From NCBI RefSeq assembly GCF_006345805.1, contig NC_043026.1, positions 4,836,001-4,900,000 on the forward strand: 64,000 nucleotides of DNA, in the 5' to 3' direction. Every line of letters starts with the position of its first letter. Position 1 is the stretch's first letter. This DNA is from Octopus sinensis (lineage: Eukaryota). The position numbers and the translations under genes were made by a program. The notes under the pieces were generated by a model. The model had not been told where the DNA came from, did no database searches, and saw nothing but the letters and a program-made list of their open reading frames with translations. Shown here piece after piece: positions 1,834 to 51,212 of this stretch.

Positions 1834-2932
1834 GAATTTGCTTCCTCACAACTTTCGCAAAATTAAATGTTTTTTAATGAAATTTTCTACAAATATTCTT
1901 CAGATGGTTTAGATTCCGATTAAATCGGAATTCATTGTGAAAACCGTTTGTCCCTGGGTGGGAAAAGCAGTTTTAGAAAATTCACAAGATTTGCCTTTGT
2001 TATGAAAGAAAAAAAGTTTTTCCTATAAATCCCCATAGAATCGGAATCTACACCATCTGAAGCATATTTGTAAGAAATTCCATGAAAAATATCCATTTCC
2101 CTGCAAGTTATTACGGAAGAAGCATATACATCATCAAGGAACCTTTATACACATGTATATTTATATATACCTACATATACACACATGTCTTTGCTATGTT
2201 TTTTAAACACATAAAACTCATAGATGCATACTTTTATAATATTTTGCACTTAAACCGCAAGAGGACAATATTTTCAGAGTTGCTTCTTAAAGTGTCCTTC
2301 ACTTTTTTGATGAAAAACGATACAAATTTCAGAGTATTTGGCTGTTATTTCTAGCATGATGTTAGGCCGTAAATTGTCCTTCGATTTTTATTTGTGATGA
2401 AACAAAAATGTGAAGGTTTAGGTGGCTCTTTCTAGCATGAAATGAGACCATATACAGGTCAATTTTATTTATGAATGCTTCTTATCTGTCCTTCAAATTT
2501 TATATGAAAAATAAAGTGGTTTCTATTTCTAGCGTGAAAAATGACCAGCTATGGGAAAGCTTTTACTGAATGCTTCTTAAAGTGTCCTTCTCTTTTTTTA
2601 TGAACCCCCAACAACAACCCTACGAGGACGAAAGGCAATGTTTGTGCGTGTGTGCAGTTGGAATGTCACTGCAACAACAACAACAACAACAACAATCTAT
2701 TCTTATTAAACGTTAAAAACTGTCAGATGCAGACTGCACACACGCACACACAACGCTGATGACGACGATGATGATGACGATGATGACGATGATGATGATG
2801 GTGGTGGTGATGATGATGACGACGATGATGATGATGGTGGTGGTGGCGGTGGTCGTCTGCCTTTTAATGGAGAATCAATGATTATGAAAGTCTCTGGTTT
2901 CGGACCAGACATTCCTATACATACATGCATGC

Positions 2933-2982
<50 letters not shown>

Positions 2983-2990
2983 CATCCTGT

Positions 2991-3700
2991 GGCATAACTA
3001 CAGATGAACACCCCATCGACTTTGTTTCCTAATAACTTCCAGGAAAATGGATATTTTTAATGAAACTTCCACTTTCATTTTCTAAGAGAAAAGGATGCTC
3101 TCAAAAGAAATCCTCTTTTACAAAGCTCTTATTTAAATCCCTGTGGATAAATCCCAGCAAGAATCTTCTCAGGCTCTCCAATATTTTACGATTATATAAA
3201 GAGAAAGAATCGGGGGCCAGGAAGTGGGGCTAAAAATAATCAGAGATTTTTAAAATATTCTTTTTATTTTTTTGTAACGTAAATGTGTTTCTGAGGGAAA
3301 AAATGAGAAAAAAAAAGAAGACAAGGAGGGTGGTGTGCTAGAAACAACAGCCAAATCTCCCTTAAATCACACACTTTTTCCCTTGACCCCTTACAAAACA
3401 TTTTGCCAACAAATTTCTTTTAATCGTAATCTACATCATTTGAAAGTTATTTCTATAAAATTTCATTCAAAAATACCCATTTTCCTGAAATTTATGAGGA
3501 GGGAAAATGTCTCGTTGTGTGAATTTCGCGAAACTCCTTTCCGCAACCCTTCAGAAAATGTTTTTCCAACAAATCCTTACAAAAACTCAATCTACAGGAT
3601 CTAAACGATTATTTGTTGAAAGTTTCCTTCAAAAAATATCCATTTTTCTGCAAGTTATGAGGAAACAAAGTCGGTGGGGGTATATATCTGTAGTTATGCC
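2991..3700. mobile_element. Non-autonomous inverted-repeat element (MITE-like), copy 2
   Basis: Same element within the second tandem unit. Confidence 0.55.
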
Positions 3701-4787
3701 GAATTTGCTTCCTCACAACTTTCGCAAAATTAAATGTTTTTTAATGAAATTTTCTACAAATATTCTTCAGATGGTTTAGATTCCGATTAAATCGGAATTC
3801 ATTGTGAAAACCGTTTGTCCCTGGGTGGGAAAAGCAGTTTTAGAAAATTCACAAGATTTGCCTTTGTTATGAAAGAAAAAAAGTTTTTCCTATAAATCCC
3901 CATAGAATCGGAATCTACACCATCTGAAGCATATTTGTAAGAAATTCCATGAAAAATATCCATTTCCCTGCAAGTTATTACGGAAGAAGCATATACATCA
4001 TAAAGGAACATTTATACACATGTATATTTATATATACCTACATATACACACATGTCTTTGCTATGTTTTTTAAACACATCAAACTCATAGATGCATACTT
4101 TTATAATATTTTACACTTAAACCGCCACAGGACAATATTTTCAGAGTTGCTTCTTAAAGTGTCCTTCACTTTTTTGATGAAAAACGATACAAATTTCAGA
4201 GTATTTGGCTGTTATTTCTAGCATGATGTTAGGCCGTAAATTGTCCTTCGATTTTTATTTGTGATGAAACAAAAATGTGAAGGTTTAGGTGGCTCTTTCT
4301 AGCATGAAATGAGACCATATACAGGTCAATTTTATTTATGAATGCTTCTTATCTGTCCTTCAAATTTTATATGAAAAATAAAGTGGTTTCTATTTCTAGC
4401 GTGAAAAATGACCAGCTATGGGAAAGCTTTTACTGAATGCTTCTTAAAGTGTCCTTCTCTTTTTTTATGAACCCCCAACAACAACCCTACGAGGACGAAA
4501 GGCAATGTTTGTGCGTGTGTGCAGTTGGAATGTCACTGCAACAACAACAACAACAACAACAATCTATTCTTATTAAACGTTAAAAACTGTCAGATGCAGA
4601 CTGCACACACGCACACACAACGCTGATGACGACGATGATGATGATGGTGATGATGATGATGATGATGGTGATGATGACGACGATGATGATGATGGTGGTG
4701 GTGGCGGTGGTCGTCTGCCTTTTAATGGAGAATCAATGATTATGAAAGTCTCTGGTTTCGGACCAGACATTCCTATACATACATGCA

Positions 4788-4850
<63 letters not shown>

Positions 4851-5107: not shown

Positions 5108-8100
5108 TTATTTGTCAAAATAAAAGAAAGCAAAAGATTGACGTCCAGGAATAATTCCAAAAACCATCAAAGAATTGTCTGAAACATCCAAACCAAGAAC
5201 TTCAAAGACTTCATTATCATCCCATCTGAGGAGTAAATATTTTGGATTATCTTTTAATCCCAGGATTTCATCATCTTCAGATGTTTCCTCTTCAATATGT
5301 CGAGGTATTTCGTAAATATTGTTTATTAAATCTGTTATATAAACACATTCACCAATTATGGTCAGACGAGGTCTTGGAATATAATCTTCCGGACCTAAAA
5401 TTATTCCTCTTTCTATTCTTATCTTCCTCACCAAAGACTTTTCCCTGAACCATTCCACAAAACACAAATATTCCCAAAATTCTAACTCCTCCTCCTCCTC
5501 CATCTCCCTCCTCACAACAACAACATCACCAAAAGATGTGACTCCCACACCATCCACCCCTTCATCTCCCTCCAACCTTCCCCATCTCCCCATCTTCCCA
5601 CGACATACTTCATCTTTACATTTCCCATCTTTGATATCAACCACATCCACATAATAAGGGTCAAAGATGTAGGGGTCATTGCAAACATAGTAATCCTTGT
5701 TGTTCTCCCACATTCTTTCGTATTTCTTGTGTCTCTCTTCTTGAGTTATGTCTCTAATATAATGACCACCACACACGAGTTGATTGTCGTTGTATTTATA
5801 AATCCTGTTGTAGTATTTCTCAGTTCTGATGGTTTTTAAACGACGGAGATCCCTGTCAAAGACCCTCATTTCTCTCCCAAAGGCGACAATGAAACATTCC
5901 TCTGTCCACCGACAAATGTCCAGTGGTGGTCGTTGTTGTTGTTCATGTTGAAGTATGTCCACTGTTGTTGTTGTTGTTCTGATTAATGTGACACTTTCTC
6001 GAAACATCAACACACTCACATTCTCATCTAACTTAATTAGTTTACTGTTCCGGTCCCTAATGTCCCTCAAATCATAATCAACAGGTTCCTCGAATGCAGG
6101 AATGGAAAAAGGGACCATTGCTGTCCTATATGGAAGTCTCCTCACTGATATTTCATCAATTCCTGAATTATTAATCTCCGCTATGTAATTACCACATCTC
6201 ACCTTTAATCTACCTTTACCAATTATTTCACCTGATTTACCTCTTCTCCCTCCATCTCCATCTCCTCCTCTGTGTTCCAATTTATTAATTAATTCATTAC
6301 TGAATATTTCCTTGTTTGTTTCAGATGTAATGGAAGGGAAACGAAGACCAGAATCAAGATTTAATGACGACACAGATTCCAGAATGTTCACTTGGTCCCC
6401 ATCAATCTTTATGCAATGACATTCAATCAATTCAATATGTACACACCAGTAAATACCCGCCACTTTTCTCCATATTACACCATAAGGGATGAGACTCAAC
6501 CAAACTTGAGATGTCTGCAAATCTTCTCCATTCAGTTGAAATATTTCTTTCCTGTTAGGAACTGTGGCCATTATGTGTGATTCTTGTGTAAAACACACAC
6601 CACCAACTAAACTTGCAACATTTCTGTGACGTAGCAACTGGCCGTCTTCATCGAATATTTTAACATTTCCATTATTGGCTTTTTCACACACAACTGTCTT
6701 TCCTTCCTCAGAGACATCAAAATCTTTTACTTGAACAGGACATTCGTCTGTTTGTAAACGAGCAACCGGGAAGCTGTCTCGATTCACCGTAAACAACCCT
6801 TCAACATACAATTCATTCGTTCCCCTCATGGGGCTTCCAACAAACCTTGGTCCTTTACAGTCTATACTGGAGAAATCTACTTCTTCTTTATAGATTCTTT
6901 TATTTAAAAATATTCTCTTGTATTCCCCATTCTGGGTCAAACACAAAATGTTTCGATATTCAGATGAACCAGAACATTTCTCCCACCCACATTGAATGTA
7001 CAAAAAACTGTCATCAATTGTCATCCTGTCATCACCAGAATAATCATCCATGTAGTGTCTGACTGAATGTAAATATTGACCACCACTGTTGAAGAAAATG
7101 ATGAATCTCCTGTTGAAGACAATGATGACATCTTCATCAGTAACTTTAATATCCTGGATTCTATCAGAATAATTTCCATCTTCGTCTCTCCTTATTAATA
7201 GTTCAGGTATGTCTATTTTTTTTTTTTCCTCCACACTCGAATGTATTTCATCAATATCAACAAAATGCAAATGTCTTCCATCTCCCCATTCACTAAAAAC
7301 CAGTTGATTGTTTGATAAAGAAGCCACACAATTATATTTATTTCTCGTTTGGTAAATTACCAATGACAATGGAAATTCCACTTTTAATGTCAACAGTTGG
7401 GATTTATTAGAAAGATCAAAAATATCCCTCATCGTAATGACCAGTGTGTTTGACTGCCATCGACACATTTTAATATATCTATAAACATTCACTTTGATTG
7501 AATCCATAAGGTGACCATCCAATGTGAATATCTTAATGTTTCCATTCTCCTTGTCACATCCTGCAATCAGATTATTTTCAGTAAGAACCAAATGATTAAT
7601 CCTCGCTGGTCCTTTGTCTCCCAAATGTTTAGGGAGAGGAATATGTCTGGCTTTATCAGAAACTGTCAGGTCCTGTAGATATAAAGTGGAAGACAACATT
7701 TCACTGAGAGAAATGTTTCTGGAAAATACATCCACCAGGTCGATATAATAATTAAGTTGATTATTAGTAACGAGATCATTAACCAACAAATTCTGATCAT
7801 TTATGGCAAACATATGGCTTCTGTCTATCAGATAAACAGACGTTTGGTCAATTGATCCACCTTGGAGACTGAGGGGACGTTTCACTTGGGACATTAAAAC
7901 ACTGGGAACCATCTGACAACCGCCATGACCACCACCACCTATTCTAGTGTTGTACTGAAAAGCTTTTCCCCTAGTAACAATTAATAGCTTTTCTGTTTTC
8001 TTGTCTATTGATAATGATTTCACAAAAACAGGGATATTAATTGTCTTAATTACTTCCACTTGATTATAATAATTGATGGCTAAAATGTCTAAATGTGATG

Positions 8101-10489
8101 GTTTATCACAATAACAAACAATTTCACCTTCACCCATCTTACACACCCGTACATAAGGCTGCCTTAACGATACACTTCTCACTGTCTTTGATATGTTTCC
8201 AATGACCCTTAATTGTTTCTGTAGGGGTAATGTGACCCCTATATGATTAGAATCCCATCGACATATATCTGTGGCTGTAGACGGCAGAGATAATCTGGAC
8301 ACAACGTCTCCTTCCTCAGAAATGTACAACAAGCAATCATGCTTGATGTCGGACACCACCAACTGTCCATTGGACAGATTACATATTTCGCCAATTACAA
8401 GTTTTTGGTCATTCTCCTTTTCTTTGAGTCGTAGATTTAGATTTCTGATATAAGGACTTTTCGTGGGTAAACGACAGCCAGACGACCGGTCTTGATACTT
8501 GTAAAGAAGAACCCTGTTGAGTTGAGTGTCCGGGACATAAAGAGTTCCTTGGAAAACAGCAATGTGAGGGTGAACAGGGAAAGGCAGTTCCCACTGCCAT
8601 TTCATTTGTCCATATAGATCGTAACATCTGAGAATAGAGTGTCTCCTGAAGAGGACATAGAAATAAACATTATCAGAGTAGATGTGATGAGGGTGGCCAT
8701 AGAATGGAAGGTATTTTTGAAAAAGTTCTTCACCATATGTGGAATAAAATACCATTTTATTTTCGTTTCCATCTACGACTACAAAATTAATTGGAGTTGC
8801 AGCAATGCTGACATTATGATGTCCCAGAGAAATTCTTTCTGCAATGTCAACTTTATCTTCGTTGATCAATAGGATATGGACCTCGCTTTTGTTTCCACTT
8901 GTGGCTAGAGCTAAACACTTATTTGATACAAAATGACATAGTTTAATGTAATCAGTATGGACTTTCATTAAAGGGCCTTTCATTAGCCCAGGGCATGTGA
9001 TACACTGAAATTCTTTGTTTTCATGGTAAAACACCAAAAATCCTTTAGAATTCATTCTACAAAAGCAAGAAGGAATCTCAGGGAAAGTTGAATTATTTTG
9101 GTTAATTATTTCTCCAGTCTCAGTGAATAATATAGCTTTATTATTCCTGTAGAATATTAATATAGAAGATGTAGACATAGGTAGAATATTAGTAATGTTG
9201 TAGCAATCCTCAATATAAATATAGTTGTTCAATGTTGGGGTCCATAGCTGGGGGTTATATGACTGCCTGGGCCAAAAGTCTTCATTTGTTCCAATGATAT
9301 AAAGGACATCAAAATAATCGGTTACAAAAATGTTTTCTTTGCCAACAGAAATATGGCGGCATTTCATGCCAATTTCTCTTGTTGTCACAGCACCTGTACC
9401 CGATATCTGATAAATAATATGTCCCTGAAGGACATAAAAATGGTTTTGGTACACAGAGATGTGGCTTGGAATGTCCAGGGAATTTGTATCCACCTCAAAT
9501 AACTGCTGGCCATCCACATTGTAACAGGTAACCCTGTTAATATTGGAAAAGGATACTAAGAGTTTATTTTGTGCTCCTACAGCAATATCTGAAGGGGTTT
9601 CTTTCGTTATGAATTCGTATTTTATTCTATTCTCTTCCCAGTCAATGACGTATATGGTCTGACCAAACATTTCTACACCTATAAGCGTGGAATGTTCCAA
9701 ATAAGAAACCAAGATTAATCCTAGCTGAATTCTTTTGATTTCAAAACTTAAAGGGTTGATAATAAGAATCATTTTTCGAAATGGGAGGGTGGCCAGGACT
9801 GTGTCTTGACTGATTCTGGTAAAATCAGTGACAGAAGATGAGCAATGAACTTCATTTCTGTTGCCGACTCTTGTTATACAACATATTGTCATACAGTAGT
9901 GGGAATATGTTACAATACCCCCTTGTATGACAACAATATTGGATATTGGGTTGCTTAAGTCTTCACCAGATTCCTCAATCTCTACTTCTCTGGTCACAAC
10001 TGGCCGAAGAGGACGAAATTTTGTGATTACTTTTGGTGGTTCAATGGTCTTGTGGTTGTATGGGTTACAGGTGACATAAATGTCAAAGAGTCTTTGTTGA
10101 AACCAATCAAGGTTTTGGTGAACAAAATCATTATTTTGTTCTGCAATTTCCAGAAATCTTGGCATTTTACGTTTGATATTACGTAAAATTCGAGATCCAT
10201 TTAAACCCAGAGAGTCCATGTGATTACATTTATCCTTTACATAATCTATAAACGTATTGATGTGGTCTGTTTTGATTAGTGCTCGGTAACATGTCACAAT
10301 ATGAAGGAAACTTGGTAACATGGACTTTTCCTGTTCTTTAGATTTCTTTGTGTCTTTTCTTTCCTGTTCTCTTTTCTTTGTGTTTTGTGTATGTAATATT
10401 TGGGGAAGAATTGGTGTAGTTTCCTTATAAATTGCTGTTGTGGCAGGAATGAGAGCCAACATTTTGTTTTCTTCATTAATCTTCTCCAT
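5108..10489 (-). CDS. Intronless 1793-aa protein with six tandem NHL/TolB-like beta-propeller modules
   Basis: 5.4-kb uninterrupted ORF with start context aaaATGG and in-frame stops just upstream. Blade motifs typical of molluscan NHL-type propellers (IGEICNLSNGQLVVSD, PSDIAVGAQNKLLVS, NIKIFTLDG, NVKIFDEDG). A D-I-C-R-W-like motif recurs about every 230-290 aa. No RING or B-box seen. Confidence 0.85.
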   Translation of the reverse strand: MEKINEENKMLALIPATTAIYKETTPILPQILHTQNTKKREQERKDTKKSKEQEKSMLPSFLHIVTCYRALIKTDHINTFIDYVKDKCNHMDSLGLNGSRILRNIKRKMPRFLEIAEQNNDFVHQNLDWFQQRLFDIYVTCNPYNHKTIEPPKVITKFRPLRPVVTREVEIEESGEDLSNPISNIVVIQGGIVTYSHYCMTICCITRVGNRNEVHCSSSVTDFTRISQDTVLATLPFRKMILIINPLSFEIKRIQLGLILVSYLEHSTLIGVEMFGQTIYVIDWEENRIKYEFITKETPSDIAVGAQNKLLVSFSNINRVTCYNVDGQQLFEVDTNSLDIPSHISVYQNHFYVLQGHIIYQISGTGAVTTREIGMKCRHISVGKENIFVTDYFDVLYIIGTNEDFWPRQSYNPQLWTPTLNNYIYIEDCYNITNILPMSTSSILIFYRNNKAILFTETGEIINQNNSTFPEIPSCFCRMNSKGFLVFYHENKEFQCITCPGLMKGPLMKVHTDYIKLCHFVSNKCLALATSGNKSEVHILLINEDKVDIAERISLGHHNVSIAATPINFVVVDGNENKMVFYSTYGEELFQKYLPFYGHPHHIYSDNVYFYVLFRRHSILRCYDLYGQMKWQWELPFPVHPHIAVFQGTLYVPDTQLNRVLLYKYQDRSSGCRLPTKSPYIRNLNLRLKEKENDQKLVIGEICNLSNGQLVVSDIKHDCLLYISEEGDVVSRLSLPSTATDICRWDSNHIGVTLPLQKQLRVIGNISKTVRSVSLRQPYVRVCKMGEGEIVCYCDKPSHLDILAINYYNQVEVIKTINIPVFVKSLSIDKKTEKLLIVTRGKAFQYNTRIGGGGHGGCQMVPSVLMSQVKRPLSLQGGSIDQTSVYLIDRSHMFAINDQNLLVNDLVTNNQLNYYIDLVDVFSRNISLSEMLSSTLYLQDLTVSDKARHIPLPKHLGDKGPARINHLVLTENNLIAGCDKENGNIKIFTLDGHLMDSIKVNVYRYIKMCRWQSNTLVITMRDIFDLSNKSQLLTLKVEFPLSLVIYQTRNKYNCVASLSNNQLVFSEWGDGRHLHFVDIDEIHSSVEEKKKIDIPELLIRRDEDGNYSDRIQDIKVTDEDVIIVFNRRFIIFFNSGGQYLHSVRHYMDDYSGDDRMTIDDSFLYIQCGWEKCSGSSEYRNILCLTQNGEYKRIFLNKRIYKEEVDFSSIDCKGPRFVGSPMRGTNELYVEGLFTVNRDSFPVARLQTDECPVQVKDFDVSEEGKTVVCEKANNGNVKIFDEDGQLLRHRNVASLVGGVCFTQESHIMATVPNRKEIFQLNGEDLQTSQVWLSLIPYGVIWRKVAGIYWCVHIELIECHCIKIDGDQVNILESVSSLNLDSGLRFPSITSETNKEIFSNELINKLEHRGGDGDGGRRGKSGEIIGKGRLKVRCGNYIAEINNSGIDEISVRRLPYRTAMVPFSIPAFEEPVDYDLRDIRDRNSKLIKLDENVSVLMFRESVTLIRTTTTTVDILQHEQQQRPPLDICRWTEECFIVAFGREMRVFDRDLRRLKTIRTEKYYNRIYKYNDNQLVCGGHYIRDITQEERHKKYERMWENNKDYYVCNDPYIFDPYYVDVVDIKDGKCKDEVCRGKMGRWGRLEGDEGVDGVGVTSFGDVVVVRREMEEEEELEFWEYLCFVEWFREKSLVRKIRIERGIILGPEDYIPRPRLTIIGECVYITDLINNIYEIPRHIEEETSEDDEILGLKDNPKYLLLRWDDNEVFEVLGLDVSDNSLMVFGIIPGRQSFAFFYFDK

Positions 10490-10605
10490 TTTATGAATAT
10501 AGAATTATTATCTTTTTCTGTTAATATTTCTTTTCTGTGGATTTTGTTTTTCTTCCTTTGGAATACAATTTATCTCTTCAAAATTCACTAATTTTTACAT
10601 GAAAG

Positions 10606-10622
10606 CTGAATAAAATGAAAAC
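10606..10622 (-). promoter_or_regulatory. Candidate splice acceptor for the exon carrying the 1793-aa ORF
   Basis: Minus strand ttttcattttattcag|CTTTC, 116 nt upstream of the ATG; the exon would start at 10605. Confidence 0.45.
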
Positions 10623-10901
10623 TTTATTAGTTTTGTGAAAAGCTTTGATAAAATAATATTTACTTGATTCATTCAAAGAATTTCAAGGAAACACACATTT
10701 CATTAAATATATTAAACAAATTGTTTATTTGACAGTGAAGTTAAACATTTAAACTGTTTTCAATGGAATAATCATTAGAAATAAAACTTGAAGATATAAA
10801 TACACCATTATCTTTATTGACTGAATATAAGTGATGGTGAAAAGTTTTGTAGTAAGAAGGAATATAAATATTTGCTGAGGTTATTCTACAGATATTATCG
10901 G

Positions 10902-11088
10902 TAGAAATTATAGCCAGGACTGATTTCCTGCTACAACATTCATATCGAAATGTCAGACGGAAACAAACAATGAGATCAAAGAGAAAAACATCTGTTGTTT
11001 GTTCTCATTGTTTATCTCATTGTTTGTTTACATCTGACATCTCGATAGGAAAGGTTTTAGCAAAAATCAGAGCCAACTATAATTTCTA
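10902..11088. mobile_element. Hairpin MITE (about 187 bp, arms about 75 bp)
   Basis: tagaaattatag...atgtcaga..aaacaaacaatgagat (10902-10977) pairs with atctcattgtttgttt..tctgacat...ctataatttcta (to 11088); roughly 80% arm identity. Confidence 0.7.
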
Positions 11089-11292
11089 TGGAATATCAAT
11101 AGAATAATGTGAAAAACACTGCTAACAAAGTAGAATGTGGTGTTGACTTCTAAAACGATTTAATATATTTTACAGGAATTGATGGTTGCATAATGAAATA
11201 CCACGTCCCTACAAAATCAGGAATATAAGTATTATAATAATTATATGCACTGGAAATGATGTGACAGTCATGGTTGGCTTGGTTTCCATCAT

Positions 11293-11302
11293 ATTTACCT
11301 GG
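11293..11302 (-). promoter_or_regulatory. Candidate splice donor of an upstream non-coding exon
   Basis: Minus strand CCAG|gtaaat; would define an intron of about 693 bp (11298-10606) ahead of the propeller exon. Confidence 0.3.
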
Positions 11303-11912
11303 ATTCACAGATACCAATAAAGCTGGAGATGAAACTGTTCTTAACCTGACAAATGCTGTAAATCTCTCGACATTTCAATATAATCCACACAATTATCATA
11401 CACAACATTGATTAACTCGGAAAGCTTATCCAAAGATGGGCTTTCATATAATCACACTGATAGACAGCATGTTGAGAGGATCGTTATTATTTGTTGCTGA
11501 TTGAGATAATAAAGATTGGTTAATGAATAAACCCAATTAATGAAAGTTAGGTTCATCTTAATTATCTTTAATATAAGGGACAATGTTTGGGTAGCAATGA
11601 GAAAGATGTCTTTGTATGAAAAAGGGGTTTGGCAGGTGAAGTGTGTTTTGTTTTGTGTGAGGTGAGGAGTTATAACTTGGTGTAGTTTATTATGAAGTAT
11701 TGGGGGTTTAATGAGGTGGATTAGGAAATATTGGTGGGGGTGTTTAATGACATTGTGGTGACCCATCATCATCAGAATGATCCTCCACCGCCTCCTTGGT
11801 CTATGAAATAATGACTGTTACTCTATTGACCCCAGGAGGAATGAAAAATAAACGAGACCTTCTTCAGGATGTCAGCTCTTTGAATATACATGGACTAAAC
11901 AACAACATATTT

Positions 11913-12666
11913 TTTGGGAAAAGCTGGGTAAGGATATGTTGTTGTTATTGCTGTTGTTGTTGACAACAAAGTTTATAAAGAGAAAAGCAGATAATTGCCA
12001 ATATTTCTATTGTAAAATTAAATTGGAATGAATGTTTATGTTTCATTTGTGCCATTCTACTTGGTTTATTTTGGGGAAGAAAATCCTACAAAAACTCTCA
12101 TAATAATTAGACTTTAATCTAATCGTAGATGTATTTATATACACATGCATACATATATATGAATGAATGTGTATAATATATACACAAGGATGCACATATG
12201 TATATTTATACATCCATACGTCTGTATGTATGTATGATGATCATCATTTTACCCCCACTTTCCATGCTGGAATGGGTTGGATGGTTCAGAGAATATCTTG
12301 CCTGAAGTTACATTTTCTGGTTTTCTTTCCACAGCTGGATGCTCTTCCTGACACCAACCACTGCACAATGTGCACTGGGTGCATCTTATGGCACCGTCAC
12401 TAGAGACAATCGCCATGTCCTTGACAAAACTAAAGGTTCCCCTCAATCTCTGAGTGTGACATATACCTTGGGATGGGTGAGAGATCTAGGGTAATAAATA
12501 TATGAAAAGGAGTGGCTGAGTGTTGGGGAGAGACTCAGGTGGGTCCAGTAACATCCCTAGTTTCATTGGAAGAATGGTGAAGAGAAGAGATTTACTGCCA
12601 ATCTTTGTCACAGCAATAAGATAGAGTAAAAAGAAGAAGAGAGAGTGATTGAGAGATGAAAGATAG
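11913..12666 (+). repeat. Dispersed duplication, copy 1 (copy 2 at 18638-19394)
   Basis: About 755 bp at roughly 93-95% identity, spanning unique-looking DNA plus repeat junctions; ORFs 12167..12403 and 18890..19126 nearly identical. Confidence 0.9.
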
Positions 12667-17574: not shown

Positions 17575-18637
17575 TTCTATTTTGATTTGTTTTGATTTGA
17601 TTTTGATTTTGATTTTGATTTTCACTTGCCTCAACAGGTCTTCACAAGTGTCACAAGAAGGAAGGTATGCACAGGTGGACTGACTACATCCCAGGTAGGG
17701 GCCACGGGTTATGGCCTGACTAGTCTTGCCAGGTCTTCTCACGCACAGCATACTTCCATAGGTCTCGGTCTCTAGTCATTTCCTTGGTGAGACCTAAAGT
17801 TCGAAGGTCATGCTTCACCACCTCGTCCCAGGTTTTCCTGGGTCTACCTCTCCCACAGGTTCCCTCAACTGCTAGGGTGTAGCACTTTTGCACACAACTA
17901 TCTTCAGCCATTCTCGTCACATGACCATACCAGCGCAGCCGTCTCTCTTGCACACCACAACTGACGCTTCTTAGGTTCAACTTTTCTCTCAAGGTACTTA
18001 CACTCTGACGATTATGAACACTGACATTACACATCCATCGGAGCATACTGGCTTCATTTCTTGCAAGCTTACGCATGTCCTCAGCAGTCACGGCCCATGT
18101 TTCACTACCATGTAGCATGGCTGTACGTACACATGCATCATACAGTCTGCCTTTTACTCTGAGCGAGAGGCCTTTTGTCACCAGCAGGGGTAAGAGCTCT
18201 CTAAACTTTGCCCAGGCTATTCTTACTCTAGCAGTTACACTTTCAGCACACCCACCCCCGCTACTGACTTGGTCTCCTAGGTAGCGGAAGCTATCAACTA
18301 CTTCTAGTTTGTCTCCCTGGAACGTGGCAGAAGTTGGTCTCTGCACATTTCCAGTGTTTATTGCTCCTGAGAATCTGCCACAGACAAAAACTATTTTCCT
18401 AGTTAGCCTTCCTTTGACATTGCTGCACCTCTTATGTGTCCATAGCTTACACTTGGTGCACCTTATAGAGTTTCTACCTACACCTTTTTTACAGATCGAG
18501 CAGGGCCATCTACTTGAAGTCGTTTGTGATTGGTCCACCTTCCTACTTATTAGGACTTTGGTTTTGGCTAGGTTGATTCTAAGGCCCTTCGATTCTAATC
18601 CAGTTCTGATAGTGACTCAGCAATTAGAGCAAGGTCA
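17575..18637 (-). mobile_element. RTE-clade LINE, 5'-truncated (C-terminal RT region, PHD-like finger, partial 3' UTR)
   Basis: ORF 17720..18538: LEVVDSFRYLG, RLYDACVRTAMLHGSETW, RRLRWYGHV, GRGRPRKTW. Confidence 0.92.
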
Positions 18638-20695: not shown

Positions 20696-21769
20696 CTGCA
20701 AACAAACGACTCTGTTTGTGTGACGTGACATTTGTTTATAATTCGCAGCAGATGTCAAGACAAGGAGACATGAGCAGACATATGCACACACACACACACA
20801 CACAACACACACACACACACACCACATTACATGCATACACATACAAGTACAAATGTAGATATGCATACATGAATATACACACACATGTATATACCATAGG
20901 CTTTATCAGTTCCTTGTACGAAACCCACTCACAAGACTTGTGCCAACCTGGAACATTAGAAGAAGTTAATTCTTTAAGGTGCTGCAAAGTGGGACTGAAC
21001 CTGAGACCACAAGGTTGTAAAGTGAATTTCTTAACCATACAGCCATGCCCCCATCTTTTTTTTGGTGATATTTTGAAGATAATAATAATCCTTTCTACTA
21101 TAGGCACAAGGCCTGAAATTTTGGGTGTGAGGTCTAGTCGATTACATCAATAAGTACTGGAATAAGTACCAGTTGCACAACTCCAGTGTGTAACTGGTAC
21201 TTATTGAATTGACCCCAAAAGGAAGAAAGGCAAAATCGACCTTGGTGGAATTTGAACTCAGACTGTAGCGGCAAACGAGTCATCATAATATTAATAATAA
21301 TAAATGGCTTCAAATTTTAGCACAAGCCAGCAGTTTCAGGGGAGCAGGTAAGTTGATTACAGCGACCCCAGAACTCGAAAGGTACTTATTTTATCGACCC
21401 TGAAAGAATGGAAGTTGACATCGGCAACATTTGAACTCAGAACGTAAAGACAACCAAAATGCTGCCAAGCATTTTGCCCAGCATGCTAACTGTTCTGCCA
21501 GCTCACCACCTACATCATCATCATCATCATCATCATCATAATAAACAATAACAACAACAACCATACTTTTCCTATTTTATATCCTTCATATGTCCCCTTT
21601 TACTTTCATCTCTCTCTCTCTCTCATTCACTGTCTCCTTTTAAATATCAACTTCAACATTTCATTTCCCTTCTTTTACATAAACATATATTATGTGTGTA
21701 TATATATACATATATATATAATATATATATATAATATATATATATATTATATATATATTATGTATCATC

Positions 21770-22090
21770 ATCATCATCGTTTAACGTCTGCCTTCCATGC
21801 TAGCATGGGTTGGACGATTTTGACTGATGGCTAGCAAACCAGATGGCACACCAGGCTCCAATGTTGATCTGGCAAGTTTCTCTACAGCTGGATGCCCTTC
21901 CTAATGCCAACCACTCCGAGAGTGTAGTGGGTGCATTTTACGTGCCAGTCAGGTGGTACTGGCAACGACCTCACTCGAATGGTGTCTTTTACGTTCCACT
22001 GACACGGAAGCCAGTTAACCACTCTGGCAACGATCACGCTTGGATGATGCTCTTAGCACCCTACTAGCCCGGGTACAAGTGCCAGTAAGG
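21770..22090 (-). mobile_element. RTE 3'-tail fragment or RTE-tail SINE
   Basis: (cat)n-cgtttaacgtc...catgctagcatgggttggacg...ctggatgcccttcctaatgccaaccactccg, shared with the 3' ends of the RTE copies in this window. Confidence 0.8.
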
Positions 22091-22094
22091 CGAC

Positions 22095-22127
<33 letters not shown>

Positions 22128-22130
<3 letters not shown>

Positions 22131-22478
22131 TTTTATTCTTGTATTTGCTTCAGTCATTTGAGTGTGGCCATGCTGGAGCACTGCCTTTAGTCAAACAAAT
22201 CAACCTGAGGACTTATTCTTTCTAAGACCAATACTTATTCTATTGGTCTCTTTAGCCAAATTGCTAAGTTACGGGGATGTAATCAAACCAATATTGGTTG
22301 TCAAGCTCTGTTGGTGGGACAGAGACAGATAAATATATATGACAGGCTTCTTTCAGTTTCCGTCTAACAGATCCACTCACAAGGTTTTGATTTGCCCAAT
22401 GTGCCATGCAATAGGACTGAACCCAGAGCCATGTGGTTGGCAAGCATGCTTCTTACCACACAGCCACACTTGTGCCCT
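22128..22478 (-). mobile_element. tRNA-derived SINE, family A
   Basis: Head with A/B-box-like tggctgtgtgg and ggttcagtcc, then a microsatellite spacer and a tail with ctccagcatggcc..gactgaa. Confidence 0.8.
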
Positions 22479-34746: not shown

Positions 34747-36879
34747 ATGGAACTTTACCCGCTGGATTTTTCTCAGAAAAATATACCTATCCCTGCAACG
34801 AAGCAATATCTCAAAGGTCTTATAGAGAAAACAGAAGAGTTAATTCGAAGATTGAGATGGAAAGCCTTCTTCTTTGATAATAAACAGAAAATAGAAGGAA
34901 ACAAATATGGATTTAAATCTCCCAGAACCCCGCCACCTATTCCGGAATTAGAAGCCTTCGAGAAAGACCTTTTCGAGCTTATTAGGAAAATTAAATTCCG
35001 CAAATATACCAACCAATTACATAGAAATATGAGAGAAAAAATTAAGGAGATTAACAACTCGAATAAGATCTTCGTTAATTCTGATAAGACAAGGAACTTA
35101 TATGCACTTGATAAGGACGTTTATAAGCGCCTGATTTCGAATAGTGTCACAGACACATACAAAAAAGACAACACGAATATATACAAAGAGGTGAACTTAG
35201 AAGCAAGAGGAATAGCTATCGATCTTAAGATTAGCGATAGGATTGAATATCTTTCACCATGACCAGCTTTTATTACTCTGAAAGACCATGAAGCCAATTT
35301 TAGTAGAAACCCCAAATGTAGATTGATAAATCCGGCTAAAACTGAGATAGGAATTATATATCAAAAATATTTGGGACCGTATTTTAGTTAAGTTAGATAG
35401 TGAAGTAGACTTGAGAATTGGGAAGAATAGTAAGTCAGTTATAGAGTGGTTTAAAGGTATTAGCTATAAGAATAATTGTAGTTTCACACAATTCGACATT
35501 ATTGACTTTTACCCGTCAATATCTAGGACGTTGCTCCTAAGGGCATTGGACTTCGCAAGCAGTATGTCAACATCGATAGCTCGGAAATTGATTATTATGC
35601 ATGCGAGGAAATCGCTTTTTTTTTCGAGGATTCCACCTGGATTAAGAAGACTGAGGATTCTCTTTTCGATGTACCGATGGAGGCATACGACGGGGCTGAG
35701 TTATGTATGCTCATAGGAGCCTTTATTCTCCATAATCTAAAAATAGAATTCCCATTTATAGATGCAGGTTTATATAGGGATGACGGCCTTATAGCCACGC
35801 ATAATCTAAACGGCCATGAATCAGATAGACTTAGGAAGGACCTCATTGATTTCTTTCAAAGGATGGGCTTACGGGTTACAATAGATGCTAACCTGAATAG
35901 TGTAGATTTTTTAGACGTAAATTTTAATGTAAGGTCGGATAGATTTAAACCTTTCCGTAAGCCCAATGAAAAGCTATCGTATATTAGCAAAGATTTGAAC
36001 CATCCACCAGTTATCCTTAGGAACTTAGTCAGCAATGTAGGTAGAAGAATATCTTCAATTTCTTCGGACGGGGCAGCATTCCATAATGCTGCACCTTATT
36101 ACGATAGCGCATTAAAGAATAGTGGTTTCTCTGAGAAGATCCAGTACAACCAGCTTAATGCTGGTAATAATGCTGCACGAAGAACTAGGACCAGGAAAGT
36201 TTTGTGGTTCAACCCGGCTTTCAGTTTGGCCGTAAAGACTAATATAGGTAAGGAATTTTTGAGATTAGTCTCTAAGCATTTTAAGCAGGGTCATAAATTC
36301 TATAGGATATTTAATAGAAGAACCCTGAAGGTTAGCTATTCTTGTTGCAGAAATTTCGCCTCTTACATTAGCCAGCATAATAGGAAGCTAATTGAGATTA
36401 GACATGGTGCCGAGCCCATTAAGAAATGCAATTTCAAAAACGAAAGCTCCTGTCCGTTAGAAGGGAAATGTCTAGTGAAAGGAGTAGTTTATAGAGCCAC
36501 GGTGCAAGTAGAAGGCTTATCGGAATACAAGACATACACAGGGGCTTCAGAAAATTCATTTAAAACACGATTTTATTCTCATAAAAATTCATTTAAATAC
36601 CCAGAGAATAGGAAGAGGACCAGCCTAGCAAAATATGTCTGGGAACTAAAAGAAAAGGAAACCCCACCTTTCAACGTGACATGGAGCATTCTGGACAGAG
36701 TGGCACCATACAGGCATGGAGCATACAGAAATAATTTTAAATGCAAACTTTGCCTATTAGAGAAAATGTACATTTTATTCAAAGACAATAATTCTTTGAA
36801 TCAAAGAAGTGAGCTAATGAACTTATGTAGGCACGCAACTAAATTTAAAATGTCGAATATAAATATACCATATGGATAG
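34747..36879 (+). pseudogene. Penelope-like RT + C-terminal GIY-YIG ORF, disrupted
   Basis: PAFITLKDH, NPKCRLINPAK, FDIIDFYPSI, YDGAELC, GLYRDDGL (RT), VVYRA...TYTG (GIY-YIG). TGA at 35260-35262 and frameshifts near 35.36 and 35.6 kb. Confidence 0.9.
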
Positions 36880-45826: not shown

Positions 45827-48826
45827 AAGGCCTGGAAGAACGGTGGTAGCAGGGAAGGGTATCAGACTGCCAGAAGGGAAGCTAGGAGACAGGTCTATCT
45901 AGCCAGAGGGGAAGCAGATAAGAGAAAATTTGCCAATGTCCTGCGCCGTGAGGATGAAAGACTTGAGGTATTTCGTGTTGCAAGACAGTGTGGGAGAGAG
46001 AATCGTGATGTGGTAGGAGAGAAATGTGTTCGCATGGAGGATGGTTCACTTGCGCTAAATGAGGATGCAAAGAGAGAGCTTGGAGACGCCACTATGAAAG
46101 TTACTGAATGAGGAAAATGAATGGGATAAAGAGAGTCTGCCGAATGTTGACCCTACAGAGGGACCAGCTATCCGAGTTGATAGTTCCGTGGTAGCTAAGG
46201 CAATTAGAAGCATGAAGACAGGGAAAGCCCCAGGCCCATCAGGAATTACTGCAGAGATGCTCAAAATATCTGGCAGTGTCGGCTATAACCTAGTCACCCG
46301 TATAGTCAACCAGGTGATACACGAAGGAGTCATACCCAATGACTGGTGCAGCAGCATACTAGTCAACTGCTACAAAGGTAAAGGTGATGCCCTAGATACA
46401 ATAATTACAGAGGTATCAAGCTGTTGGATCAGGTAATGAAGGTTACGGAGAGGGTCATAGCCCAACTAATTAGAGAGAGAGTTAGTTTAGATGAGATGCA
46501 GTTTGGGTTCGTGCCAGGAAAAAGTACCACTGATGCTATATTCCTGGTAAGGCAGCTGCAGGAGAAATACCTAGCCAAAGATAAGCCCCTGTACCTGGCT
46601 TTCGTTGACATGGAGAAAGCTTTTGATAGGGTCCCCCGATCCCTTATCTGGTGGTCAATGAGGAAACTAGGGATAGATGAATGGCTGGTGAGGACTGTGC
46701 AAGCCATGTACAGAGATGCCGTAAGTAAGGTTAGGGTTGGCAACATGTACACAGAAGAATTCAAAGTAGAGGTTGGGGTCCACCAGGGTTCAGTACTCAG
46801 CCCCCTCCTATTTATCATAGTACTCCAGGCAATTACGGAGGAATTCAAGACAGGCTGTCCCTGGGAGCTCCTCTACGCTGACGACCTTGCTCTTATTGCT
46901 GAGTCACTATCAGAACTGGAGGAGAAGTTCCAGGTGTGGAAGGAGGGTTTAGAATCAAGGGGCCTTAGAATCAACCTAGCTAAAACCAAAGTACTAATAA
47001 GTAGAAAGGTAGACAATCCACAAATATCTTCAGGAAGATGGCCTGCTCGATCTGTAGAAAGGTGTGTAGGTAGAAACTCTATAGATGTACCCAGTGTAAG
47101 CTATGGACACATAAGAGGTGCAGCAATGTCAAAGGTACGCTAACTGGGAAGATAGTTTTTGTATGTGGCAGATGCTCGGGAGCATTAACCTCCGAAAATC
47201 TGCAGAAAACAACTTCCGTCACTTTCCAGGGGGAAAAACTAGAAGTAGTTGATAGCTTCCGTTATCTAGGTGACCAAGTCAGTAGTGGGGGTGGGTGCGC
47301 TGAAAGTGTAACTGCTAGAATAAGAATAGCCTGGGCAAAGTTTAGGGAGCTCTTACCTCTGCTGGTGACTAAAGGCCTCTCGCTCAGAGTAAAAGGCAGA
47401 CTGTATGATGCGTGTGTACGAACAGCCATGCTACATGGCAGCGAAACATGGGCTGTGACTTCTGAGGACATGCGTAAGCTCGTGAGGAATGAAGCCAGTA
47501 TGCTCCGATGGATGTGTAATGTCAGTGTACATACTCGACAGAGCGTTAGCACCTTGAGAGAAATGTTGTACCTAAGAAGCATCAGTTGTGGTGTGCAAGA
47601 GAGACGATTGCGCTGGTATGGTCATGTGGCGAGAATGGATGAAGATAGGTGTGTGAGAAAGTGCCAATCCCTAGCAGTTGAGGGAACCCGTGGAAGAGGT
47701 AGACCCAGGAAAACCTGGGACGAGGTGGTGAAGCACGACCTTCGAACTTTAGGCCTCACTGAGGAAATGACCAGAGACCGAGACCTTTGGAAATATTCTG
47801 TACGTGAGAAGACCAGGCAGGACAAGTGAGCCCAGCCCACTTATGAATGCCTTTCCTCCCTTGGACACAAAGACCGGTTGAGGCAAGCGAAGTCGATATA
47901 GAACCTCATCCGACGACAGACACCCATCCCAACCCCCCATGCTTGCGAAGACATGTTGGGGCAAGCGAAATCGAAATCGAAATTGAAACCGAATTGAACC
48001 AGCCAGGATCCCTGGCCTGGTGGTACGTAAAAAGCACTATCCGACTCGGGGCCGTGGCACGTAAAATACTCCAATGCGACCGTACGACAGGCACCCATGC
48101 CAACCCCCTTTGCTTGTGAAGACATGTTGGGGCAAGCGAAATCGAAATCGAAATCGAATTGAACCAGCCAGGATCCCTGGTCTGGTGGTACGTAAAAAGC
48201 ACTATCCGACTCGTGGCCGTGGCACGTAAAATACTCCAATGCGACCGTACGACAGGCACCCTTGCCAACCCCCTTTGCTTGTGAAGACATGTTGGGGCAG
48301 CGAAATCGAAATCGAATTGAACCAGCCAGGATCCCTGGTCTGGTGGTACGTAAAAAGCACTATCCGACTCGTGGCCGTGGCACGTAAAATACTCCAATGC
48401 GACCGTACGACAGGCACCCTTGCCAACCCCCTTTGCTTGTGAAGACATGTTGGGGCAAGCGAAATCGAAATCGAATTGAACCAGCCAGGATCCCTGGTCT
48501 GGTGGTACGTAAAAAGCACTATCCGACTCGTGGCCGATGCCAGCACCGCCTTGACTGGCTTCCGTGCGGTGGCACATAAAATACACCAATCTGACCGTGG
48601 CCGTTGCCAGCCCCGCCTGGCACCTGTGCAGGTGGCACGTAAAAAGCACCCACTACACTCACGGAGTGGTTGGCGTTAGGAAGGGCATCCAGCTGTAGAA
48701 ACATTGCCAAATTAGACTGGAGCCTGGTGCAGCCTTCTGGCTTCCCAGAACCCCGGTCGAACCGTCCAACCCATGCTAGCATGGAGAACGGACGTTAAAC
48801 GACGATGATGATGATGATGATGATGA
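45823..48826 (+). mobile_element. RTE-clade LINE, 5'-truncated, frameshifted, with (GAT)n tail
   Basis: KAPGPSG, DMEKAFDRVPR, GVHQGSVLSPLLF, LLYADDL, RRLRWYGHV in ORFs 46188..46436, 46424..47143 and 47365..47829; tail ggacgttaaacgacgatgatgat. Confidence 0.95.
47920..48535 (+). repeat. Tandem minisatellite (about 160-170 bp, 3.6 copies) inside the RTE 3' UTR
   Basis: catgttgggg at 47952, 48123, 48288 and 48446; period varies with the number of gaaatc hexamers. Confidence 0.92.
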
Positions 48827-48945: not shown

Positions 48946-51212
48946 ATCATCATCATCATCATCATCATCATTTAGCATTCGCTTTCCATGCTAGCATGTG
49001 TTGGATGGTTCAACTGGGGTCTGGGAAGCCAGAAGGCTGCACCAGGCCCAGTCTGATCTGGCAGTGTTTCTATGGCTGGATGCCCTTCCTAACGCCAACC
49101 ACTCCGTGAGTATAGTGGGTGCTTTTTATGTGCCACCCGCACAGGTGCCAGACGGAGCTGGCAAACGTCCACGGATGGATGGTGCTTTTTACGTGCCACC
49201 GGCACGGGGGCCAGGCGAGGCTGGCAACGGCCACGAACGGATGGTGCTTTTTACGTGCCACCAGCACGGAGGCCAGTCGGGGTGGCGCTGGCAACGGCCA
49301 CGATCGGATGGTTCGCTTACTTGTCACAGGCACTGGTATCACAGCTGCAATTTCCATTGATGTTGATCGACTTCGATTTTGGTTCTGCTTTCTGATATCT
49401 GATTTGATTTGGTTTGATTTTGAATTTGATTTTTTGATTTTTTGATTTTTGATTTTCAATTGCCTCAACGGGTCTTCACAAGTGGAGTTCTGTGTCCCAA
49501 GAAGGAAAGGTATGTATAAGTCGACTGGCTACATACCAGGTAGAGGCCACGGGTTATGGTCTCACTAGTCTTGCTGGGTCTTCTCATGCACAGCATACTT
49601 CCATAGGTCTATGTCTCTAGTCATTTCCTTGGTGAGACCTAAAGTGCTTCACCACCTCATCCCAGGTTTTCCTGGGTCTACCTCTTCCACAGGTTCCCTC
49701 AACTGCTAGGGTGTGGCACTTTTGCACACAACTATCTTCAGCCATTCTCGTCACATGACCATACCAGCGCAGACGTCTCTCTTGCACACCACAACTGATG
49801 CTTCTTAGGTCCAACTTTTCTTTCAAGGTACTTACACTCTATCGATTATGAACACTGACATTACACATCCATCGGAGCATACGGGCTTCATTTCTTGTGA
49901 GCTTACACATATCCTCAGCAGTCACAGCCCATGTTTCACTACCATGTAGCATGGCTGTACGTACACATGCATCATACAATCTGCCTTTTACTCTGAGCGA
50001 GAGGCCTTTTCTCACTAGCAGGGGTAAGAGCTCTCTAAACTTTGCCCAGGCTATTCTTACTCTAGCAGTTACACTTTCAGCACACCCACCCCCGCTACTG
50101 ACTTGGTCACCTAGGTAGCGGAAGCTATCAACTACTTCTAGTTTTTCTCCCTGGAACGTGGTAGAAGTTGGTCTCTGCACATTTTCAGAGTTTATTGCTC
50201 CTGAGCATCTGCCACAGACAAAAACTATTTTCCTAGTTAGCCTTCCTTTGACATTACTGCACCTCTTATGTGTCCATAGCTTACACTTGGTGCACCTTAT
50301 AGAGTTTCTACCTACACCTTTCTTACAGATCGAGCAGGGCCATCTACCTGAAGGCGTTTGTGATTGGTCTACCTTCCTACTTATTAGGACTTTGGTTTTG
50401 GCTAGGTTGATTCTAAGGTCCTTCGATTCTAAACCTTGCTTCCACACCTGAAACTTCTCCTCCAGTTCTGATAGTGACTCAGCAATTAGAGCAAGGTCAT
50501 CAGCATAGAGGAGCTCCCAGGGGCATCCTGTCTTGAATTCCTCTGTTATTGCCTGGAGGACTATGATAAATTGGAGGGGACTGAGGACTGAACCTTGGTG
50601 GACCCCAAACTCTACCCGGAATTCTTCACTGTACTCATTGCCAACCCTCACCTTTCTAGCAGCGTCTCTGTACATGGCTCGCACAGCTCTCACTAACCAT
50701 TCATCTATCCCTAGTTTCCTCATTGACCACCAGATAAGGGATCGGGGGACCCTGTCGAAGGCTTTCTCCATGTCAACAAAAGCCAGGTACCAGGGCTTGT
50801 CTTCCCAGGAATATAGCATCAGTAGTACTGTTCGCTGGCACGAATCCAAACTGCATCTCATCTAAACTAACTCTATCTCTAATTAGTTGGGCTATGACCC
50901 TCTCCGTAACCTTCATTACCTGATCCAACAGCTTGATACCCCTGTAGTTATTTCTATCTAGGGCGTCACCTTTACCTTTGTAGCGGTAGACTATTATGCT
51001 GCTACACCAGTCATTGGGTATGACTCCTTCGTGTATCACCTGGTTAACTATACGGGTGACTAGGCTATAGCCGACCCTGGTAGATATTTTGAGCATCTCT
51101 GCAGTATTTCCTGATGGGCCTGGGACTTACCCTGTTTCCATGCTTGTAATTGCCTTAACTACTAAGGAACTGTCAACTCGGATTGCTGGTCCCTCTGTTG
51201 GTTCGACATTGG
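48946..51212 (-). mobile_element. RTE-clade LINE, 5'-truncated, tail-to-tail with the previous copy
   Basis: ORF 49839..50861 with YADD, PHD-like C4HC3 and FRYLG; (cat)n tail at about 48946-48970. Confidence 0.95.

Follow-up and report, generated by a model that had tools for sequence, protein, structure and literature searches.

NHL propellers, as known so far, occur singly at the C-terminus of a protein and bind RNA or protein ligands on one face of the propeller, as in Brat. In the TRIM-NHL proteins (Brat, TRIM71/LIN-41, TRIM2, TRIM3 and Thin/Abba) they form part of conserved single-copy developmental regulators. A gene of Octopus sinensis departs from this pattern. It lies in a 64,000-nucleotide stretch of contig NC_043026.1 (NCBI RefSeq assembly GCF_006345805.1, positions 4,836,001 to 4,900,000), referred to here as the window, and its open reading frame (ORF) encodes a chain of six homologous propeller-type units with no TRIM module attached. 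The account favoured here, as moderately probable, is that of a gene derived by sixfold multiplication of an NHL propeller, belonging to an expanded family of mosaic genes and specifying a multivalent binding scaffold.

Lineage-specific gene expansions highlighted so far in cephalopods are few and include those of protocadherins, C2H2 zinc fingers and G protein-coupled receptors. A first-pass annotation of the window, made from the sequence alone, had taken it as established that B-box-NHL families are expanded in molluscs. Documentation is found for part of this, as expansion of a B-box orthogroup has been reported in bivalves (PMC8382680).

The gene and its internal repeat

The ORF begins with ATG and continues for 1793 codons in a single exon without an internal stop. 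From the base composition of the window (37% G+C), 6.7% of codons should be stops, and the probability that a run of this length stays open by chance is ∼7e-55. The 5.4-kb unbroken frame noticed in the first-pass annotation is thus real, and its surroundings are microsatellite-rich as described, with retroelement fragments present there as well. The ratio of nonsynonymous to synonymous divergence (dN/dS) over the whole gene is 0.46-0.73 in ten paralog pairs and 0.45 in a cross-species ortholog pair, P0049/P0068, which indicates purifying selection that is weak but real. Genomic comparison shows the ORF to be a genuine, selectively maintained, single-exon protein-coding Octopus gene. The protein has no signal peptide and no membrane segment (maximum Kyte-Doolittle KD-19 hydropathy 1.38; polar N-terminus), and it is therefore predicted to be soluble and intracellular. 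Units 2 and 3 are positively charged.

A plain self-BLASTP search of the protein reveals no internal repeat, and profile methods are therefore needed. Two family alignments were used, A1 with 17 full-length relatives and A4 with a broader set. When the A1 profile is aligned with itself by hhalign, amino acids (aa) 972-1286 pair with 707-995 (89%) and 1507-1718 with 989-1165 (79%), among others, and the offsets of these self-alignments equal the differences between the positions of a recurring motif pointed out in the first-pass annotation. All six copies of that motif are present, the third at aa 740 rather than 741, and they occupy homologous positions in six units of ∼225-315 aa, each marking the second blade of its unit (Table 1). 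Autocorrelation of the profile has peaks at offsets of 1075, 519, 556, 783, 259-266 and 291, together with a blade-scale period of 41 aa that is clear inside unit 2 (z=8.4 at offset 41).

The A4 alignment was also split into the N-terminal 180 aa and the six units (U1-U6), and these segments were compared all against all by hhalign. The comparison links all six units: U1-U2 83%, U2-U3 91%, U2-U4 93%, U3-U4 81%, U3-U6 96%, U4-U6 95% and U4-U5 66%. The N-terminal 180 aa, which serve as an internal negative control, reach no more than 0.5% with any unit.

Table 1. Coordinates of the gene, its N-terminal region, its six units and the upstream flank in the window (CDS, coding sequence; UTR, untranslated region; AF2, AlphaFold; pLDDT, predicted local distance difference test score)
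Feature	Residues (aa)	Window positions	Strand	Remarks
Complete single-exon CDS	1-1793	5108..10489	(-)	1793 codons + stop at 5108-5110
N-terminal region	1-180	9950..10489	(-)	Polar/basic start, then helices aa 58-141 (AF2 secondary structure); non-propeller
Unit 1	181-432	9194..9949	(-)	∼23 predicted strands; TDFTRISQD at aa 221; pLDDT 66-84
Unit 2	433-700	8390..9193	(-)	∼22 predicted strands; SCFCRMNSK at aa 474; 41-aa blade period
Unit 3	701-965	7595..8389	(-)	TDICRWDSN at aa 740; best-conserved signature; pLDDT <45
Unit 4	966-1255	6725..7594	(-)	Variable propeller module; KMCRWQSN at aa 1007
Unit 5	1256-1480	6050..6724	(-)	Short (225 aa), highly conserved; GGVCFTQES at aa 1296
Unit 6	1481-1793	5111..6049	(-)	Variable C-terminal propeller module; LDICRWTEE at aa 1523; best modelled
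Upstream flank, candidate promoter or 5′UTR		10490..12342	(-)	∼95% identity to O. vulgaris counterpart over 1.85 kb

Probable NHL relationship and predicted fold

A direct phmmer search of PDB with the protein gives no match, and the relationship to NHL propellers becomes visible with family profiles. The A1 profile finds Brat (E=0.065). The A4 profile finds TRIM71 (E=0.002), Brat (0.003), TRIM3 (0.038) and TRIM2 (0.09), and 11 of its 13 top matches are NHL domains of these four proteins. The propellers matched in PDB by the family profiles are all of the TRIM-NHL class (Brat, Thin, TRIM71, TRIM2 and TRIM3); no WD40 or YWTD propeller is listed among the profile matches. Each of these matches is the summed score of short blade matches. 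Unit 1 holds the best single NHL-blade match, aa 299-334 against blade 1 of Brat, and unit 4 has blade matches to TRIM71, Brat and TRIM2 at ∼aa 969-1013.

An exhaustive HMMER search of 1.84e9 representative proteins with a profile of the N-terminal half yields only 28 matches, and the nearest proteins outside the octopod family are P0062, P0065, P0063 and P0064. P0062, from the bivalve Potamilus streckersoni (KAK3588083.1; E=9e-6), combines a propeller with a B-box that passes the Pfam threshold and with a weak RING match, and it matches the teneurin NHL domain at 1e-6. P0065 is found by the family profile at E=6.7e-4, passes the Pfam NHL cut-off of 20 with 30.2 bits, and matches the NHL domains of Thin, TRIM3, Brat and TRIM71 at 8.5e-12 to 2e-8. 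P0063 has a weak Pfam NHL match (17.1 bits), and P0064 consists of a helical region and a propeller with no Pfam family. Transitive homology through bona fide NHL intermediates is therefore found, by way of P0065 and of the match between P0062 and teneurin NHL. In hhalign comparisons that used the outside proteins as single sequences, the strongest links are U3-P0064 (94.6%), U5-P0064 (92.4%), U3-P0062 (86%) and U4-P0064 (81%), with U4-P0065 at 63% over 147 columns; unit 3 is the unit closest to the outside single-propeller proteins. A homolog search with P0062, intended to supply an outside NHL profile, returned one extra protein only.

P0065 is intronless (563 aa; L008 8001-9692, ENA ERZ25069870, ctg2578_31x_l) and is composed of two near-identical tandem NHL propellers of ∼276 aa each; it is the sole other multi-unit relative found. 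On present sequences, octopods are not alone in having this propeller type in tandem copies, but six units are seen in them only.

By formal domain assignment the picture is less clear. The window protein scores 11.4 bits with Pfam NHL (PF01436; E=0.35), in unit 1 only, where the cut-off is 20. Pfam searches of the whole protein, of the single units and of all 20 aligned members return nothing above threshold and only scattered propeller-type noise, with weak sub-threshold matches to the DUF4934, WDR90, ELP1 and CNH propeller models. The NHL-type label is accordingly probable by the PDB profile matches and transitive homology, while the Pfam scores fall short of formal membership. Taking the profile and intermediate-protein evidence together, the six units very probably descend from an NHL-type propeller.

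That the protein is TRIM-less, as the first-pass annotation had put it, agrees with the Pfam results: neither a RING nor a B-box is matched when the full sequence or its first 180 aa are searched with E values allowed up to 10, and aa 1-180 contain only three Cys residues. The order of domains that defines a TRIM protein (RING and/or B-box, then coiled coil) is absent, although there is a helical segment at aa 58-141. No homology of this helical region to TRIM-like coiled coils was detected; hhalign gives it 0.2% against the pre-propeller regions of the outside proteins.

AlphaFold (AF2) models were made of the protein in two halves, aa 1-975 and aa 940-1793. The first half has a mean pLDDT of 51, with the N-terminal helices followed by all-beta blocks at 184-400 (pLDDT 66-84) and 432-664 (pLDDT 55-80). 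The second half (mean pLDDT 62; predicted template modelling score, pTM, 0.59) is all-beta, reaches a pLDDT of up to 93 in unit 6, and has a helical insert in unit 5 at ∼aa 1389-1424. The overall pattern is all-beta after the helical N-terminus, with a four-strand periodicity. DSSP assigns ∼23 strands to unit 1, ∼22 to unit 2, ∼20 to unit 4, ∼15 to unit 5 and ∼24 to unit 6; the 17 assigned to unit 3 come at low model confidence (pLDDT <45). By these counts the likely number of blades is six for units 1, 2 and 6, five or six for unit 4, and apparently no more than four or five for unit 5.

In Foldseek searches of PDB, both halves match tandem or triple propellers (IFT-A, UTP21, LRP2, EML-type, DDB1, Trm734 and Aip1) with E of 1e-12 to 1e-18 over 600-1100 columns, at 7-12% identity and with template modelling (TM) scores near 0.2. 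For the modelled chain, Foldseek confirms the propeller class. Of the six separate propellers originally proposed, the six homologous units are borne out by the profile comparisons and their propeller-type all-beta fold by the models; six closed rings are borne out only in part, in view of the low pLDDT of unit 3 and of the shortness of unit 5 with its ∼15 strands.

An octopod family of mosaic genes

The close relatives of the window protein (42-94% identity) all come from O. vulgaris, O. sinensis and O. bimaculoides and are annotated as 'uncharacterized' or 'hypothetical'. Among the 1.84e9 representative proteins the family is confined to octopods (these three Octopus species and Argonauta), which bears out the lineage restriction suggested for it, and no 1:1 ortholog of a characterised gene was found. 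Literature searches on the LOC identifiers and on octopus NHL, multi-propeller or intronless families returned nothing relevant; the sequences are public, but as uncharacterised predictions only.

Intact copies with a single exon are present in O. vulgaris, O. sinensis, O. bimaculoides and Argonauta hians. Every gene examined has a single exon, and the gene model of P0013 adds only a 7-residue upstream mini-exon. Collinear full-length alignment, of the N-terminal region and six units in one exon, characterises the octopod six-unit family. The Argonauta hians protein P0046, at 39% identity, is full-length and collinear over aa 4-1793, and the architecture therefore predates the Octopus-Argonauta split. 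A diverged lineage (P0049/P0067/P0068, ∼30% identity) is represented once in each of the three Octopus species, and its two mapped members are on large chromosomes, OX597815.1 and CM046602.1. The family as a whole comprises dozens of intact and truncated copies, with more than 15 full-length intact ORFs (∼1,800 codons) in O. vulgaris alone, where the copies are mostly on one 29.2-Mb chromosome, OX597841.1. A tight tandem array was considered and rejected: each 25-kb locus, like the 64-kb window, holds one copy, and two O. vulgaris copies are 13 Mb apart. Neither family fragments nor relic cassettes are present elsewhere in the window.

The locus closest to the window gene is L001, at 9.57 Mb on O. 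vulgaris OX597841.1. Its single-exon product, P0001, is 91% identical to the window protein over 100% of the length (94.8% at the nucleotide level), and the two DNAs align at 94.8% identity across 7.7 kb, of which 1.85 kb lie upstream; additional blocks are collinear. Synonymous divergence (dS) between the two genes is 0.058, which equals the O. vulgaris-O. bimaculoides distance of 0.059 seen for P0049/P0068; on this basis the window gene and L001 may be cross-species orthologs. The first ∼650 bp of the upstream flank are also 91% identical to paralog L002.

The units of the protein do not vary in concert among paralogs. For U1, U2, U3 and U5 the best paralog reaches 95-97% identity (up to 97% for unit 5), whereas U4 reaches at most 86% and U6 at most 89%. 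Compared with the window protein, P0010, P0013 and P0014 show 83-95% identity in U1-U3 and U5, 59-66% in U4 and 52-57% in U6, and their N-terminus is non-alignable with that of the window. The N-terminal region is the most variable part of the family, with two deeply diverged types and a mean pairwise identity of 0.37. The same mosaic is seen in dS: against P0013 it is 1.09 in the N-terminus, 0.11 in U1, 0.05 in U2, 0.17 in U3, 0.43 in U4, 0.03 in U5 and 0.38 in U6, where it rises to 1.09 at aa 1621-1710. Synonymous divergence thus varies more than 30-fold along the gene. As dS displays the mosaic, fast amino-acid change alone is insufficient to explain it, and recombination or gene conversion among paralogs is indicated. 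Module exchange also affects unit 1, since P0003 (L002) has a divergent type of it that P0006 and P0009 carry too; its aa identity is 65% and its dS 0.75, where the remainder of the gene has 0.04-0.17. Comparison unit by unit shows the paralogs to be mosaics, in which units 1-3 and 5 are homogenised and old divergent types of the N-terminus, U4 and U6 are exchanged.

At O. vulgaris locus L009 (OX597841.1), two relic copies of the last ∼82 codons lie downstream of the P0013 stop, at 21452-21697 and 21893-22138. They are 91-93% identical to the C-terminus of the window protein and 66-67% identical to that of P0013 itself. Judged from these identities, the relics are the footprint of a 3′-module replacement.

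Some paralogs tolerate low-complexity insertions at unit edges and loops. P0027 has a D-rich run of ∼50 aa in unit 4, P0033 has ∼20 copies of ESEDQ(I/L)(F/S)(E/V) near the C-terminus, and P0036 has an S-rich run in the unit 3 linker. At L004 1-18460 (O. sinensis CM016888.1), the gene of P0027 is nested within the range of an opposite-strand gene of 1956 aa, presumably in one of its introns. In addition, two O. vulgaris models on a 12.0-Mb contig, P0057 and P0083, named 'E3 ubiquitin-protein ligase MIB2-like', contain a piece that matches profile positions 141-267, the boundary of the N-terminus and unit 1; either the models are chimeric, or a family segment may truly be fused to a ubiquitin-ligase gene.

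In the window itself, a tandem duplication of ∼1.87 kb (1099-2971 and 2916-4829) lies directly downstream of the gene, and both of its copies match the single-copy segment 16924-18245 of L001 at 88-97%. Retroelement debris is found at 46424-47143 (+), 49839-50861 (-) and 17720-18538 (-), in the form of RVT_1 fragments, one of them fused to a PHD finger, and of a separate PHD-finger ORF. Many short interspersed repeats are common to the window and the O. vulgaris locus. Two further ATG-initiated ORFs, 35677-36879 (+) of 400 aa and 61820-62857 (-) of 345 aa, have no Pfam match, and each may be a repeat-derived ORF or an exon.

Possible function and comparison with known systems

The ancestor of the gene would have been an NHL-type six-bladed propeller of the kind found singly in mollusc B-box/coiled-coil-propeller (TRIM-like) proteins. 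The propeller unit would have been multiplied sixfold within one gene before Octopus and Argonauta diverged, and the gene would then have given rise to dozens of dispersed copies, most of them on one small chromosome. The protein may act as a multivalent binding scaffold, in which ligand specificity is set by the variable regions (N-terminus, unit 4 and unit 6), and the conserved propellers supply a common frame or contact a shared partner. In that case the family would amount to a diversified repertoire for recognition inside the cell, binding protein or RNA as other NHL propellers do, and perhaps its targets are fast-evolving ones such as viruses or transposons. A multivalent intracellular binding platform is the best guess that analogy with NHL domains and multi-propeller scaffolds provides. 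The first-pass annotation had proposed, as a possibility, an immune, RNA-binding or neuronal scaffold. Evolution by module swapping, as read from the paralogs, fits a recognition role and proves none. A bolder form of the proposal is an octopod-specific, germline-diversified intracellular repertoire against fast-evolving targets such as viruses or the retroelements that abound in octopus genomes, with units 1-3 and 5 as the constant frame and the N-terminus, U4 and U6 as old, interchangeable specificity modules that gene conversion would shuffle among dozens of paralogs; it can be entertained, tentatively, as a rather unlikely possibility.

Four other explanations of the locus were considered. 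If the propellers were of a non-NHL type (WD40-like, YWTD or another six- or seven-bladed kind), the NHL likeness would be a convergent blade motif. The top Foldseek matches, which are WD40 and YWTD multi-propeller proteins, would agree with this, as would the scatter of weak Pfam matches over several propeller models with the NHL threshold never reached. However, a multi-domain Foldseek query favours any multi-propeller chain, as the low identities and TM scores illustrate, whereas the sequence-profile matches in PDB are to TRIM-NHL proteins only and the nearest sequence relatives are NHL-positive. In addition, a unit length of 250-290 aa with a 41-aa period fits a six-bladed NHL propeller better than a seven-bladed WD40 propeller, and a non-NHL origin is thought improbable. 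Less probable still is a link to a mobile element, with the ORF being, or descending from, a transposon gene or a passenger. Dozens of copies, many of them truncated, spread over one chromosome and others, the intronless state of all of them, the reverse transcriptase/PHD debris that fills the neighbourhood, and the flanks shared by recent copies beyond the ORF are what such an origin might produce. Yet the protein has no transposase, integrase, reverse transcriptase, helicase or other element-type Pfam domain; DNA homology to the older paralogs L003 and L004 is confined to the ORF and includes neither flank; and there are no common termini, terminal inverted repeats or long terminal repeats. 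Each locus has one copy, the shared flanks of recent copies, with their collinear blocks, look like segmental duplication or orthology, and the P0049 lineage has orthologs in three species, the two mapped ones on large chromosomes, under the constraint noted above for P0049/P0068. A transposon origin was rejected on the restriction of homology to the ORF among older paralogs and the lack of element-type termini and domains.

Two further alternatives accept the gene and question what its copies do. The protein could be a conserved structural or housekeeping scaffold whose expanded copies are largely redundant or decaying and have no diversified specificity. Many multi-propeller proteins (IFT-A, EML, DDB1) are structural, P0049 has orthologs in three species and is under purifying selection, many expanded copies are truncated, and dN/dS of 0.5-0.7 points to relaxed constraint. 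Against this, O. vulgaris alone retains its many full-length intact ORFs, and distinct old types of the N-terminus, U4 and U6 beside homogenised units are unexpected for simple decay; the explanation is considered unlikely. The window copy in particular could be a duplicate that was recently inactivated, or never expressed, and in which no stop has yet arisen. The gene-model collection does not contain the exact protein, and dN/dS against the closest counterpart is 0.73. Set against these points are a ∼5% base difference from L001 over 5.4 kb with both frames intact, dN/dS of 0.34-0.45 for units 1, 2, 3 and 5 in the window/L001 pair, and conservation of the upstream 1.85 kb at ∼95%, which together make an inactive copy a poor prospect.

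Several observations weigh against the NHL-derived, mosaic binding scaffold that is favoured here. Pfam NHL stays below its threshold of 20 bits in every family member, the best being P0049 with 18.5, and the direct link to PDB is marginal at E=0.002. The AF2 models have low confidence in unit 3 and in parts of units 4-5. When the three most recent copies are compared, dN/dS is 1.7-2.3 in U4 and 1.7-3.0 in U6, but these values above 1 depend on 4-7 synonymous changes in each unit (nominal p 0.02-0.11, non-independent pairs) and are suggestive only. Mosaic gene conversion is common in young multigene families and by itself is no proof of a recognition function. Truncated copies are numerous on the main chromosome, and part of the family is therefore decaying. 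Lastly, the gene is known here from genomic sequence alone.

No description of a six-propeller chain without a TRIM module was found in the literature. The fold is known; what is new is the sixfold NHL-like architecture, its confinement to octopods and the way in which modules are swapped within the family. The genes would add to cephalopod genome biology a large intronless family that evolves fast and is concentrated on one small chromosome, and its combination of a conserved frame with recombined old modules is a signature usual in recognition or defence genes. To our knowledge, very little is known of intracellular immunity and genome defence in cephalopods. If the family does recognise ligands it would offer a handle on both, and a genome-defence repertoire, if that proved true, would represent a new class of invertebrate receptor, for immunity or genome defence, made from NHL propellers. 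With no recognition role, the family is still a clean natural example of a propeller that was multiplied and then diversified module by module.

Of described systems, the TRIM-NHL proteins are the only solved structures matched by the family profile (E=0.002-0.1), and they share with the octopus protein the blade pattern (aa 299-334 against blade 1 of Brat), the unit length, the ∼41-aa period and an intracellular location. They differ in having one unit rather than six. The octopus protein is without RING, B-box or filamin domain, its helical N-terminus has no detectable similarity to TRIM-like pre-propeller regions, and it belongs to a fast-evolving, multi-copy family, unlike the single-copy regulators. 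The B-box/coiled-coil and NHL-like proteins P0062, P0064 and P0065 are the nearest outside relatives. They share column by column a two-blade signature, I..l.nG.lvv.D..n..l.....G......L......DIc.......vavT.P...qL..I, which contains the motif that recurs in the six units. These proteins, however, have one or two units in 467-563 aa, and their identity to the octopod units is ∼20-32% in partial alignments.

Multi-propeller scaffolds (DDB1, Trm734, IFT-A, LRP2/5/6, EML and Aip1) are the best structural matches to the AF2 halves and likewise carry several propellers on one chain, which provides multivalent surfaces. They are of the WD40 and YWTD classes, however, with no sequence relationship to the octopus protein (7-12% identity), and are conserved single-copy genes; the LRPs are in addition extracellular, with propellers interleaved with EGF modules. 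TRIM5/TRIM22, the NLRs, the FREPs of snails and Sp185/333 of sea urchins resemble the octopod family in their lineage-specific expansion, clustering on one chromosome and pseudogenes, as well as in a conserved framework with variable modules and gene-conversion mosaicism. There is no homology between these families and the octopod genes, and the likeness is one of evolutionary pattern alone.

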